Shown here piece after piece: positions 21,016 to 31,797 of a DNA stretch of 64,000 nt; within the stretch, counting starts at the first letter, position 1, and each line of letters starts with the position of its first letter. The notes beneath the pieces are model-generated. The model was not told the origin of the DNA, ran no database searches, and saw nothing but the letters and a program-made list of their open reading frames with translations. The translations under genes were made by a program, and so were the position numbers. The stretch is from the sequence record OR258281.1; one strand, given 5' to 3'.

Positions 21016-21103
21016 GGAGAGTTGGGTGAGCGGCTTAAACCAACAGTCTACTAAATTGTCGCAGAGAAATCTGCCGTGGGTTCGAATCCCACACTCTCCG
21101 CCA
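21016..21103 (+). tRNA. trnS: tRNA-Ser, anticodon ACT
   Basis: GGAGAGT/ACTCTCC acceptor, anticodon arm ACAGT-CT-ACT-AA-ATTGT, long variable arm, TTCGAAT T-loop, GCCA end. Confidence 0.9.
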
Positions 21104-25113: not shown

Positions 25114-25148
25114 TAGTAAATAGTTCGGCACAATGTGCCGAATTAATT

Positions 25149-25485
25149 AAGTACTCTATCGTCTTTACTGATAAGCCAAACAATTGCAGTTCTGTCTTTC
25201 CAGCGGAACTAAAACTTCTGGAGAACTAATCGGATGATTAATTACACTTTTATGTAAATCAAAACATGTGCGACTTTGGCGGTATTAGTCCTGACCATTA
25301 AACCGCCATAACGATCAACATTGAAGCGATTAACTCTGAAAAGTTTAACGATTGATACATTAAAAGCTAAACGCTAGATAAGCTCAATGCACTTAATGAT
25401 ATTCAAAATCCTTGATTAACGGGAACGATGTTTGCAATTTTGATCTAGGCTTACGACAAGGCTGGTAAACGGGGTTAGAGTACTT
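25149..25485 (+). ncRNA. candidate structured RNA of about 337 nt
   Basis: Perfect long-range stem AAGTACTCTA/TAGAGTACTT; internal hairpins; no ORF; terminator follows. Confidence 0.55.
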
Positions 25486-25503
25486 TACTAATTCGGTCCA
25501 AAT

Positions 25504-25530
25504 AAAGCACCTTCAACGGGTGCTTTTTTA
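25504..25530 (+). terminator. intrinsic terminator
   Basis: AAAGCACC/GGTGCTTT plus T tract. Confidence 0.75.
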
Positions 25531-25557
25531 TTGTCTTCTTTATTTTTAGATGGTACT

Positions 25558-25770
25558 ATGTACAGTGAACAACAAATCTATCGAGTTCAATCTCACTTTA
25601 ACACCTATGGCTTTGAAGCAACCATTCTCGTTGCGATATATCATGGCGTTACAGATCCAGTTGAACTTACAAGAATCCTTTTAGATGCAGCAGTCTTTGA
25701 CTCTTCAATCAAAGACAATATCAGTATTGAAAAAGTAACTGATAGCATCAAAAAGTACACTAAATCATAG
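25558..25770 (+). CDS. hypothetical protein
   Basis: ATG 25558 after the terminator. Confidence 0.55.
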   Translation: MYSEQQIYRVQSHFNTYGFEATILVAIYHGVTDPVELTRILLDAAVFDSSIKDNISIEKVTDSIKKYTKS

Positions 25771-25780
25771 GGTAATTAAA

Positions 25781-26191
25781 ATGGATAAACCACAGTACTC
25801 TTGTTACATAGTACTCCGAAAAGACTTAGATATGCCTGTTGGTAAGTTCTCTGCACAAGTAGGACACGCAGTAGGTAAAATCTTTGAGTACTACATGACA
25901 CAAAAAGAACATCACCGAAATACCGATGATGAAGAACTTCTTTCACGTGTCAGTACTTTTGAGAACTGGAACAAAGAAGGTGGCGGTCACGGTGGTAAGA
26001 AAGTAATTCTTAAAGCCGATACTGAACTTAAACTTGAAAATCTTCGTAAGAAACTTAACGAAGACAATGTTAAGTACTTCGATATTTTCGATTACGGATA
26101 TAACTTCTTTGACGGTTTAACTTGTACTGGATTAGTACTTTATCCACGTCAGGAAGAACTAAAATACATTAAACGCTTACAGTGTTGGTGA
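25781..26191 (+). CDS. pth2: peptidyl-tRNA hydrolase, Pth2 family
   Basis: IVLRKDLDMPVGKFSAQVGHAV..KKVILK..D.G..T signature. Confidence 0.85.
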   Translation: MDKPQYSCYIVLRKDLDMPVGKFSAQVGHAVGKIFEYYMTQKEHHRNTDDEELLSRVSTFENWNKEGGGHGGKKVILKADTELKLENLRKKLNEDNVKYFDIFDYGYNFFDGLTCTGLVLYPRQEELKYIKRLQCW

Positions 26192-27742: not shown

Positions 27743-27930
27743 TGATAGTTGAAGTGGACGTATTTGAAGTACAATTAGTAGATCGCATAACAAAAAAAGT
27801 AATAAAAACATATGATGCTGGGATGGATTACGACAAGGCTTTGCAAATACAAGACCAATGGAATTTGGCATATGTTAACGGTACGAACTATACAAAAATA
27901 GAAACGTACTATGATGAAATCGAAGAATAA
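27742..27930 (+). CDS. hypothetical protein
   Basis: Coupled start; terminator follows. Confidence 0.55.
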   Translation: MIVEVDVFEVQLVDRITKKVIKTYDAGMDYDKALQIQDQWNLAYVNGTNYTKIETYYDEIEE

Positions 27931-27935
27931 ACACT

Positions 27936-27957
27936 AACCCGCTCCGGCGGGTTTTTT
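27936..27957 (+). terminator. intrinsic terminator
   Basis: AACCCGC-TCCG-GCGGGTT plus T tract. Confidence 0.8.
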
Positions 27958-27967
27958 AATGCTTTAA

Positions 27968-28209
27968 GATTATATTAGGATGTGGGCTTAGAGGCAGCCA
28001 TCATTTAAAGAGTTTCGAGAACTACGGTACTACCAGAAAAACCTTATAGTACGGTTAGACTTATAAGTTCAGGGATTAATAATTAAAAGTTTGTTTTGCA
28101 TAGGATTCGATCCTGGCAGAATTAAGTACACGAACTGAGAGGGAAAGGGAGTGTATAATGCTTTTAGTTGCCCTTAGAGAATTTGGCGTGACAGCACACT
28201 ATTATAATC
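27968..28209 (+). ncRNA. 23S rRNA L11-binding domain (helices 43/44) mimic with a 172-nt insert
   Basis: AGGATGTGGGCTTAGAGGCAGCCATCATTTAAAGAGT..GCGTGACAGCACACT matches the 23S nt 1054-1105 sequence as I recall it; closed by a GATTATA/TATAATC stem. Confidence 0.8.
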
Positions 28210-28239
28210 TTCTTAATTTGAACAATAAAAGGAAATGTA

Positions 28240-28743
28240 ATGTATGAACTAAAACAAAGACTAGATAAGCTGGAATATCTTAAGTTCTACTATGCACAAA
28301 CCAGAGAACCTATTTTTGATACACTTGAGTTCTTTGGTGAACTGGATTTATTAGGTATCGAGTATGAAGTACTTAAGGACTTGTTCAGTACTGAACAGGA
28401 ACTTTATAAGTTATCGGAATCCCTCTATTTTGAAGGTTCTAACTTAATAGACTTACTCAAAGGTACAGGTACTGTATATCATAACGGTCTTGATGTTACA
28501 TTCTCAAGAACTGAAGACCTGTTTTATATGTATCGTGATAGTTCATCTGACGTACTTTACTACTACGAAGCACAATCAGTTATGGAAGAAGTTTTAGATT
28601 ATAGTACCTGTGATTTTAACGAAATCATTTATTTTTACAAAATAGTCAAACCTCTTTCTGAATTTAATCAAAGTACCGATAAAACTGAAGTAACACGTTC
28701 CTTTATTTCTTTTCTGTTAAAGAATAATACAAGGACATATTAA
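28240..28743 (+). CDS. hypothetical protein
   Basis: AAGGA SD; 167 aa. Confidence 0.65.
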   Translation: MYELKQRLDKLEYLKFYYAQTREPIFDTLEFFGELDLLGIEYEVLKDLFSTEQELYKLSESLYFEGSNLIDLLKGTGTVYHNGLDVTFSRTEDLFYMYRDSSSDVLYYYEAQSVMEEVLDYSTCDFNEIIYFYKIVKPLSEFNQSTDKTEVTRSFISFLLKNNTRTY

Positions 28744-31705: not shown

Positions 31706-31797
31706 GGGCCAGTTGGCTAGTGGCCGAAGCCGCTCGACTCATAATCGATTACAGTTAACCAGACACATCACAGGTTCGAATCCTGTCTGGCCCACCA
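31706..31797 (+). tRNA. tRNA with CAT anticodon (Met or Ile2) and a 20-nt extra arm
   Basis: GGGCCAG/CTGGCCC acceptor, CT-CAT-AA loop, TTCGAAT T-loop, ACCA end. Confidence 0.85.

Follow-up and report, generated by a model that had tools for sequence, protein, structure and literature searches.

The GTPase-associated centre (GAC) of 23S ribosomal RNA (rRNA), which comprises helices 43 and 44 (E. coli 1051-1108), and the sarcin-ricin loop (SRL) together form the translation-factor binding centre of the ribosome (PMC2330231). The present analysis concerns an RNA element encoded by Xanthomonas phage XaC1, a 349-kb jumbo phage, which copies GAC helices 43 and 44 and is not a stray rRNA fragment. 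The element is located in a 64,000-nt stretch of record OR258281.1 (part of XaC1 at 100% identity, and referred to in the following as the window), at positions 27966-28211 of the plus strand, on which all its parts are given below. The likeness to the ribosomal domain extends to 45 of 52 core positions, the same helices, the 1082-1086 pair, the triples involving G1071 and C1072, and the same style of covariation. Conversely, RNAs of the phage type occur in transfer RNA (tRNA) arrays and outside rRNA, are closed by an arbitrary stem in place of helix 42, carry a domain of 26-356 nt followed by UUU between 1090 and 1091, and have A1101 where rRNA has U.

Extraribosomal RNAs that reproduce a protein site of rRNA are known from the messenger RNA leaders of ribosomal-protein operons, among them the L10(L12)4 leader of rplJL and the L1 site upstream of rplK/rplA (PMC10931766). 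However, these leaders are 5' untranslated regions acting in cis on the genes of the bound protein and mimic local features only, whereas the phage element is free-standing and reproduces a whole tertiary domain. No ribosomal-protein gene adjoins it, so that the position typical of an autoregulatory leader, within the 5' untranslated region of the operon of the bound protein, is not occupied, and none of the leader families in Rfam matched the XaC1 element. A different parallel is provided by GOLLD and ROOL, genes for structured RNAs that are independent of protein and accompany the tRNA genes of phages (PMC12286853); these differ from the present element in that they are not rRNA mimics and form homo-oligomeric cages. 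Searches of the element against GOLLD, ROOL, transfer-messenger RNA (tmRNA) and the other non-coding RNAs of Rfam returned tRNAs and a local match to large-subunit (LSU) rRNA only. Phages also employ RNA countermeasures, including pseudo-ToxI antitoxin RNA and phage tRNAs that replace or evade host-cleaved tRNAs. The concept, a phage RNA taking the place of a host RNA target or capturing a host effector, may be shared by the element, although the thing mimicked here is a functional centre of the ribosome rather than an antitoxin or a tRNA. To our knowledge, no virus-encoded free-standing RNA reproducing a ribosomal functional centre has been described, and the literature search yielded background papers and no description of a GAC-like phage RNA. 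Thus, rRNA mimicry by ribosomal-protein leaders and phage RNA decoys are both known, whereas a free-standing viral replica of a ribosomal centre is, as far as can be told, new.

The XaC1 element, approximately 246 nt in length, lies inside a 309-nt gap without annotation, flanked by the end of XaC1_476 at 27930 and the start of XaC1_477 at 28240. No rRNA operon was found near it in the window, which bears out the initial annotation of this DNA in describing the rRNA-like sequence as isolated between phage genes. The left boundary of the RNA locus is set by the intrinsic terminator of XaC1_476 (27936-27959; hairpin 27936-27953 with a 7-bp stem including 5 GC pairs, followed by TTTTTT). Both rRNA-like halves quoted in that annotation were recovered, a 5' half at 27977-28013 (AGGATGTGGGCTTAGAGGCAGCCATCATTTAAAGAGT) equivalent to E. 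coli 1054-1090 and a 3' half at 28186-28200 (GCGTGACAGCACACT) equivalent to 1091-1105. The former contains helix 43 including the 1067 loop (27980-28004), the 1082-1086 loop (28005-28009) and the 5' strand of lower helix 44, GAGU (28010-28013), and the latter supplies upper helix 44 with the 1095 loop, A1101 pairing with U1090, and the 3' strand of the 1054-1056 stem. The claimed identity of 45 of 52 positions also held against a real enterobacterial 23S rRNA, that of Salmonella LT2 (L328), which is identical to E. coli over the GAC stretch; the mismatches are at 1061, 1070, 1089, 1090, 1095, 1097 and 1101. The difference at 1090, listed as a change relative to E. coli, is real as such; U1090 is nevertheless the bacterial consensus, as is the entire GAGU at 1087-1090, and it is E. 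coli with GAAA that deviates (Rfam consensus). The phage-specific change is A1101, which makes the U1090-A1101 pair and is invariant in all 114 distinct sequences of the family described below.

In the comparison with LSU rRNA that the initial annotation had proposed, the 5' half was significant by two measures. It differs from 23S rRNA by 2 mismatches in 35 nt, a value that none of 100 shuffles equalled, and in a search of 361 nt the Rfam model LSU_rRNA_bacteria matched 27976-28032 with its positions 1094-1147 (19 bits, E=6e-4). By itself, the 15-nt 3' half is at chance level (2 matches found, 1.26 expected), and is accepted because of its position and its conservation in relatives rather than its own match. 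A weak GAC-loop match at 25609-25623 was rejected as a chance match within a coding sequence (CDS). The two halves are enclosed by a non-ribosomal outer stem in place of helix 42, predicted earlier and found to be real: its 5' strand (27966-27976) pairs with its 3' strand (28201-28211) at 10 of 11 positions, and the stem was recovered in the minimum free energy fold (z = -2.3). A U-rich stretch follows, before the start codon of XaC1_477 at 28240. The locus thus does not have the make-up of a 23S gene: it is isolated, 27976-28032 is its sole LSU match, its outer stem is foreign, and an insert of 171 nt is located in helix 44, between 23S positions 1090 and 1091.

The element is one of many. 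BLAST of the XaC1 region against phage genomes retrieved a set of jumbo phages matching over the GAC 5' half only, and the loci found in this way share an architecture consisting of a closing stem, a GAC 5' half whose last bases are GAGU, an insert of approximately 170-250 nt, UUUGG(C/U)GU...CACAC, and the second strand of the closing stem. This architecture was read from the sequences of GAP32, CBB, XbC2, Kaldavass, BF, pEa_SNUABM_12 and fHe-Yen9-04; the isolates, which represent several phage groups, also include the pEa_SNUABM phages, fHe-Yen9-03 and, again by reading of the sequence, Xanthomonas XacN1, Pseudomonas pf16, Ralstonia RSP15, Aeromonas 4_4572 and the more diverged Vibrio 2.275.O. 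The host genera of the isolates are Xanthomonas, Erwinia, Pectobacterium, Serratia, Yersinia, Cronobacter, Pseudomonas, Ralstonia, Aeromonas and Vibrio. The first relatives were found with the exact pattern CCC-UUA-GA-GNN. Two scans of IMG/VR followed the GAC 5' half, one with a pattern for this half (97 stretches) and one with a looser pattern in which the helix-43 loop and the 1058/1080 pair were left free (at least 120 stretches). Together 158 loci with a GAC 5' half were obtained, 149 of them in the split form and the remaining 9 truncated at a contig end or with no recognisable 3' half; contiguous rRNA was not found among them. The 149 split copies correspond to 114 distinct sequences; all family counts are among the matches listed in the IMG/VR scans and are hence lower bounds (at least 114 distinct).

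The split-form pattern (inserts of 155-185 nt) was found at three places in 185,579 species-representative bacterial genomes, all on contigs of metagenome-assembled genomes, one of which sits in an array of 14 tRNAs and a tmRNA and looks phage-like. A scan of metagenome contigs with the 15-nt pattern CCCTTAGAGANTTTGG returned chance matches only, none with a GAC 5' half, and Paenibacillus phage Pd_22F together with several short records was set aside as ordinary contiguous rRNA. Although X. vesicatoria was the isolation host of both XaC1 and XbC2, and the type of source was the same, the XbC2 element is 90% identical to that of GAP32 and close to the enterobacterial Mimasvirus elements, and the XaC1 element differs throughout the insert. 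The GAC variant does not follow the host, XaC1 having U1058-A1080 and XacN1 G-C. The inspected isolate records leave the region unannotated or call it as a small open reading frame (ORF). In Kaldavass (L015:1534-1626) the RNA is annotated as a 30-amino-acid 'hypothetical protein', and Pseudomonas phage Milchi likewise has a short CDS; such short CDS calls over a structured RNA are almost certainly spurious. Rfam 15 contains no family for GAC-like RNA, and at permissive thresholds returned only the local LSU match for XaC1 and nothing for the SRL-bearing relative L181. The GAC-like RNA thus appears to be a large, previously unannotated phage RNA family.

The 114 distinct sequences (alignment A2) were used to count covariation. 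Standard pairs occupy 96.5% of the paired cells. Shuffling of the partners lowers this to 77.1% (the observed value was reached in 0 of 500 shuffles), and displacing them by 1-3 columns lowers it to 34-61%. The pair 1058-1080, within helix 43, is UA in 41 sequences, AU in 39, GC in 28, CG in 5 and GU in 1; 1082-1086 is UA in 93 and AU in 20; 1054-1105 is GC in 59, AU in 50 and UA in 4; 1092-1099 is CG in 73, UA in 33 and UG in 8; and the first insert pair is GC in 62, UA in 29 and AU in 19. All pairs left free by the search patterns covary, the others being invariant partly since the pattern fixed them, and 1058-1080, 1082-1086 and 1092-1099 have each changed on both sides. The pairs on which the fold depends, i.e. 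helix 43 (1057-1059/1079-1081 and 1062-1064/1074-1076), 1082-1086 and helix 44 (1087-1102, 1090-1101, 1091-1100 and 1092-1099), were all found to be kept. In E. coli 23S rRNA, C1072 docks on C1092-G1099 and G1071 on G1091-C1100 (PMC2952862). Both triples are evident in the phage family: residue 1072 and the pair 1092-1099 occur as C with C-G in 73 sequences, U with U-A in 32 and U with U-G in 8, with C with U-A as the one exception, and G1071 with G1091-C1100 is present in 114/114. Since the tertiary triple covaries, the three-dimensional L11-binding fold is maintained, and not merely two hairpins. In addition, no variation occurs at U1066, G1071, G1093, U1094 and A1098, even though the 5' pattern responsible for most of the copies leaves all five free.

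In combination, these data reveal that the three-dimensional GAC fold is under selection, and we are highly confident that the element is a functional RNA with this fold. The central proposal of the initial annotation, a mimic of helices 43 and 44 split by a structured insert, is thereby strongly supported, with 114 homologues and compensatory changes in both the helices and the base triple. Binding of the L10 stalk, proposed at the same time, is unlikely: a conserved helix 42 with kink-turn, as expected of an L10(L12)n site, was not found, and the outer stem in its place is variable in sequence, covarying freely (UA, AU, GC and CG at each outer position) over 1-18 contiguous pairs.

The insert is as constant in position as it is variable in content. 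Every complete member carries one between 1090 and 1091, ranging from 26 nt in L199, where the whole element is 77 nt, to 356 nt. It starts with a covarying stem of three to five pairs and ends in UUU in 108 of 114 sequences, the next base before G1091 being G in 105 and A in 9; in XaC1 this linker, UUU plus G (28182-28185), rejoins the insert to upper helix 44. The suggestion that the insert might be an intron is contradicted by these features, as the insertion site is the same down to the 26-nt insert and the closing stem covaries. A recent insertion is excluded in the same way. Moreover, no insert-free copy is present among the 149 complete copies in viral contigs, and no Rfam intron family matched either XaC1 or a relative with a 354-nt insert. 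Comparison of the family elements with full 23S rRNA by blastn-short gave no rRNA-like segment beyond the GAC and, in the relatives described below, the SRL.

In XaC1, the base of the insert (28014-28018) consists of UUC (28014-28016), which pairs with GAA (28179-28181), and GA (28017-28018), which stands opposite GA (28177-28178) and is read from the pattern as the non-bulged strand of a k-turn-like junction. Two arms follow, the hairpin P1 (28019-28070), closed by GAAC (28019-28022) and GUUC (28067-28070), and, after A28071, P2 (the two together 28071-28173), closed by GGG (28072-28074) and CCC (28171-28173). The bulged strand of the putative junction, UUA followed by GA and GAA (28174-28181), completes the insert base. 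The same arrangement, 5' NNC-(G/A)A-[hairpin P1]-A-GGG ... CCC-UUA-GA-GNN-UUU 3', is the consensus of a sub-type of approximately 30-37 distinct members, including the Mimasvirus and Eneladusvirus phages, XacN1 and RSP15. In this sub-type the NNC/GNN stem, the four closing pairs of P1 (GAAC/GUUC, GAGC/GCUC, GUUG/CAAC, GCGG/CCGC, GUGA/UCAC and others) and the GGG/CCC stem all covary. CCC-UUA-GA-GNN opposite NNC-GA is what we take to be a kink-turn (k-turn) signature with a third helix on the non-bulged strand, i.e. a k-junction. The insert base of the XaC1 type thus reads as a k-turn three-way junction, with a canonical (C) stem, a 3-nt bulge, tandem G.A/A.G pairs, a non-canonical (NC) stem and the third helix. 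It differs from described k-turns of rRNA in its place, on helix 44, whereas the rRNA Kt-42 is in helix 42, and in being known from pattern and covariation alone; the sequence pattern is present in 30 of 34 candidate relatives including XaC1, a count of pattern and covariation and not of observed geometry. A second sub-type (pf16 and Aeromonas 4_4572) ends in ...CCCG-NAAA-YGGUAAGGC.... Two further motif candidates were dropped, UUAGA in the insert as a T-loop, which is not conserved in XaC1 or other relatives, and GUCGAGAGCGAACCG in the Mimasvirus inserts with the inner GACCGGA as SRL-like, which are likewise not conserved in XaC1 or other relatives. The k-junction, in contrast, fits all members of the XaC1 type.

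A genuine SRL core is found in the largest elements. The sequence AGUACGAGAGGA, a bulged-G motif with GAGA tetraloop that matches the SRL oligonucleotide used in PMC3496166 and of which the identical 12-mer occurs once in Salmonella 23S rRNA, is present with at most 1 mismatch in 12 of the 114 distinct elements and in none of their reverse complements. These relatives (L181, L211, L221, L263, L266, L267, L270, L273, L275, L276, L282 and L305; e.g. L181:5938-6342) all have inserts of 309-356 nt and the XaC1-type junction. The core caps a hairpin whose stem covaries (UUCCA/UGGAA, UUGCA/UGCAA, GUGCA/UGCAC, UUCCC/GGGAC and GUGCCC/GGGCGC), and UUAA(G) follows the hairpin in most of the 12 copies. 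Because UUAAG (28122-28126) also flanks the hairpin at 28094-28121 within P2 of XaC1, we infer that this hairpin is positionally equivalent to the SRL copy. The SRL-bearing relatives would hence mimic both RNA parts of the factor-binding centre and XaC1 the GAC only, as judged from sequence.

The genomic surroundings point to the tRNA genes. Among the first 71 distinct elements, on which the context was counted, a tRNA lies within 3 kb of 48 and within 300 nt of 37. Many elements have a tRNA on the same strand, on one side or both, with its end 8-23 nt ahead of the GAC core or its start 11-23 nt behind it, which leaves no more than a few bases between the tRNA and the closing stem. L011, for example, is flanked by tRNA-Lys and tRNA-Gln, L008 by tRNA-Ser and tRNA-Asn, and pf16 by tRNA-Asn and tRNA-Pro. 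Such close same-strand tRNAs argue for co-transcription and for release of the element by tRNA-processing nucleases. The closing stem of the Mimasvirus and Eneladusvirus elements passes, on its 3' strand, into a U-tract. The protein-coding neighbourhood, in contrast to this, shows no conserved partner: clustering of the ORFs over 76 loci gave no family in more than 9 loci, the small ORFs upstream of the XaC1 and GAP32 elements are unrelated, and Pfam identified nothing among the XaC1 neighbours (XaC1_477 included) except a Pth2 domain approximately 2 kb upstream. Genes for L11 or L7/L12 were not found in these phages, the matches obtained being bacterial contamination or from unrelated phages. 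Given the lack of both a phage L11 or L7/L12 and a conserved neighbour, any protein partner would therefore be a host protein.

Several observations concern the accompanying genes. The Pth2-type peptidyl-tRNA hydrolase gene of XaC1 is at 25781-26191, 2 kb upstream of the RNA, and a 2'-5' RNA ligase gene immediately precedes the RNA in XacN1. Genes for RNA repair and for the maintenance of translation accompany the element. The tRNA arrays of L006, L011, L160, L179, L256 and L329 contain a tRNA with CUA anticodon (amber-suppressor type, labelled 'tRNA-Pyl' by ARAGORN), and L329 in addition has a tmRNA gene with the tag peptide ANTYALAA.

On this basis, the following mechanism is proposed. The RNA would be transcribed together with the tRNAs and freed by tRNA-processing enzymes, or, in XaC1, might start downstream of the XaC1_476 terminator or be cut from read-through, with the closing stem protecting its ends. 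It would then fold as a GAC and bind host uL11, binding that we consider probable in view of the conservation of the fold. The RNA would then act in trans as a decoy of the translation-factor binding site of the ribosome, competing with ribosomes for proteins that dock on, or attack, this site. Among these, host anti-translation effectors, such as a GAC- or SRL-directed toxin or defence enzyme, and the stringent factor would be the most plausible clients, with translational GTPases or tRNA as a third compatible client; SRL-bearing relatives would mimic both RNA halves of the site. The SRL is a classic target of ribosome-inactivating enzymes. As background, the bacterial toxin Tre23 ADP-ribosylates helix 44 at 1095-1098 (PMC8661411), the isolated SRL oligonucleotide binds EF-G (PMC3496166), and the stringent response depends on the thiostrepton loop, with A1067 and the SRL both contacting the A/R tRNA (PMC5829649). 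Taken as a whole, the mechanism of a processed, uL11-binding small RNA that acts as a decoy of the factor-binding site is given a probability of about 0.5. The decoy roles suggested in the initial annotation (titration of L11, blunting of RelA signalling, absorption of toxins) would be compatible with these observations, and gain in interest through the relatives with an SRL copy. A bolder reading, in which large phages carry a portable RNA replica of the site (GAC in all, SRL in the largest), made from tRNA arrays at tRNA-like levels, as bait for host or competitor enzymes that disable ribosomes at these two vulnerable sites or as a trap for the stringent factor or translational GTPases, is put forward tentatively and is doubtful in its present detail.

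A number of findings weigh against the decoy mechanism. Conservation is stricter for the fold than for the two loop adenines in contact with factors and thiostrepton; A1067 and A1095 are retained in most sequences, but A1067 and 1095-1097 are less conserved in the phage RNA than in rRNA. Position 1067 is A in 90 sequences, G in 21, U in 2 and C in 1; 1095 is A in 108 of 114, XaC1 itself having G1095; 1096 is A in 92 and G in 20; and 1097 is C in 57, U in 42 and A in 15. Because 1067 and 1095-1097 vary, base-specific contacts (thiostrepton, parts of the EF-G contact) are not uniformly selected. Moreover, the obligatory insert and the UUU linker would be superfluous for a pure L11 or toxin decoy and are accounted for by none of the three clients, and the SRL core is absent from the XaC1 element, which has a plain hairpin before its UUAAG. 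The XaC1 element also has no adjoining tRNA, the nearest being approximately 3.5 kb downstream and 4.1 kb upstream, and a scan limited to sigma-70-type sites gave no promoter for the RNA. Finally, the element ends 29 nt upstream of the XaC1_477 start codon, where a leader role would be possible.

The variation in the loops is of less consequence if sequestration of uL11 is the function in itself, as the changes at 1067 and 1095-1097 are tolerable for binding of the L11 C-terminal domain. The RNA would in that case soak up free or exchangeable uL11, and, since ribosomes lacking uL11 cannot activate RelA, (p)ppGpp (guanosine tetra- and pentaphosphate) would fail to increase as amino acids and tRNAs are depleted by the phage. 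The conserved unit indeed comes close to the smallest RNA that binds L11, fold determinants included, and the location in tRNA arrays suits a module for maintaining translation. In addition, the thiostrepton loop takes part in the activation of RelA, which thiostrepton blocks (PMC5829649). However, most uL11 is already within ribosomes at infection, and neither the SRL copy of the 12 relatives nor the obligatory insert is explained, which leaves this an unlikely account of the family.

Alternatively, the GAC, with the SRL in large members, could serve as a platform that binds a translational GTPase, the EF-Tu ternary complex or the tRNA elbow, and stores, chaperones or redirects it for phage translation. 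On the ribosome A1067 stacks on the tRNA elbow and the SRL touches the acceptor stem (PMC5829649), and EF-G is bound by isolated oligonucleotides of the SRL and of the GAC (Munishkin and Wool 1997, cited in PMC3496166). In the phage RNAs position 1067 is a purine in 111 of 114, and the elements are located among tRNA genes. Isolated rRNA pieces nevertheless have weak affinity for the factors, only approximately 10% of members have the SRL, and sequestering factors offers no evident benefit; such a platform is rather unlikely.

The roles of the two parts could also be reversed, the GAC being a mere stable folding or protein-binding handle (giving, for instance, protection from nucleases by uL11) and the variable inserts the working part, with different jobs in different phages. 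The range of inserts from 26 to 356 nt and the structured sub-types with motifs of their own (k-junction, YGGUAAGGC, SRL-bearing) would be in line with such a division. Still, only the GAC and the UUU linker are common to all members, and the hairpin inserts of 26-44 nt (L199, L285 and L183, the last an element of 95 nt in all) leave scant space for an effector domain, so that we regard this explanation as improbable.

For XaC1, the location of the element after a terminator and 29 nt before a start codon, with no terminator in between, could suggest a cis-acting leader regulating XaC1_477, in analogy with the rRNA-mimicking leaders of ribosomal-protein genes. A cis-regulatory role is nonetheless disfavoured, because the neighbouring genes vary across the family; the flanks are tRNAs in most members, the closing stem runs into the U-tract in Mimasvirus and Eneladusvirus, and XaC1_477 itself has no Pfam family. 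A regulatory leader is on these grounds very improbable. A non-functional captured piece of host rRNA, an assembly chimera, or rRNA with an intron or mobile element can be set aside as practically excluded because of the covariation, as, although host rRNA fragments do occur in some phage records (Pd_22F and several short records, with contiguous GAC), 114 distinct copies with compensatory changes come from independent isolates and metagenomes and share the insertion site, the UUU linker and A1101, contiguous rRNA flanks and intron family matches are lacking, and an alignment produced by the search pattern is contradicted by the positions that the pattern left unconstrained.

The window holds other RNA features. 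At the gathering threshold Rfam reported seven tRNAs only, and ARAGORN eight tRNAs in the 64 kb; the XaC1 set comprises a tRNA-Ser whose anticodon, ACT, is unusual and a tRNA-Met(CAT) that at 92 nt is long for class I (21016-21103, 31706-31797). A 420-nt unannotated gap between XaC1_469 and XaC1_470 (25114-25535, plus strand) has a strong hairpin at its start (25124-25143) and a terminator at its end (approximately 25507-25530), and folds far better than shuffled sequences (z = -4.2, 0 of 100). For this gap Rfam gave no match and the phage collection no homologue; it may be a further non-coding RNA.

For the annotation of phage genomes, the family implies that pipelines should gain a model for GAC-like RNA. 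Its conservation pattern amounts to a natural mutagenesis, in which the GAC nucleotides needed for the fold are set apart from those needed for factor contact, and its members provide structural biology with natural compact GAC, and GAC plus SRL, constructs with built-in stabilising domains. If uL11 or a GAC-directed protein is bound by these RNAs, they would represent a new way in which phages manipulate or protect translation, and could expose ribosome-targeting defence effectors that are not yet known. Should the decoy or bait reading be true, the family would constitute a new class of anti-defence or host-takeover RNA, a natural 'ribosome-in-pieces'.

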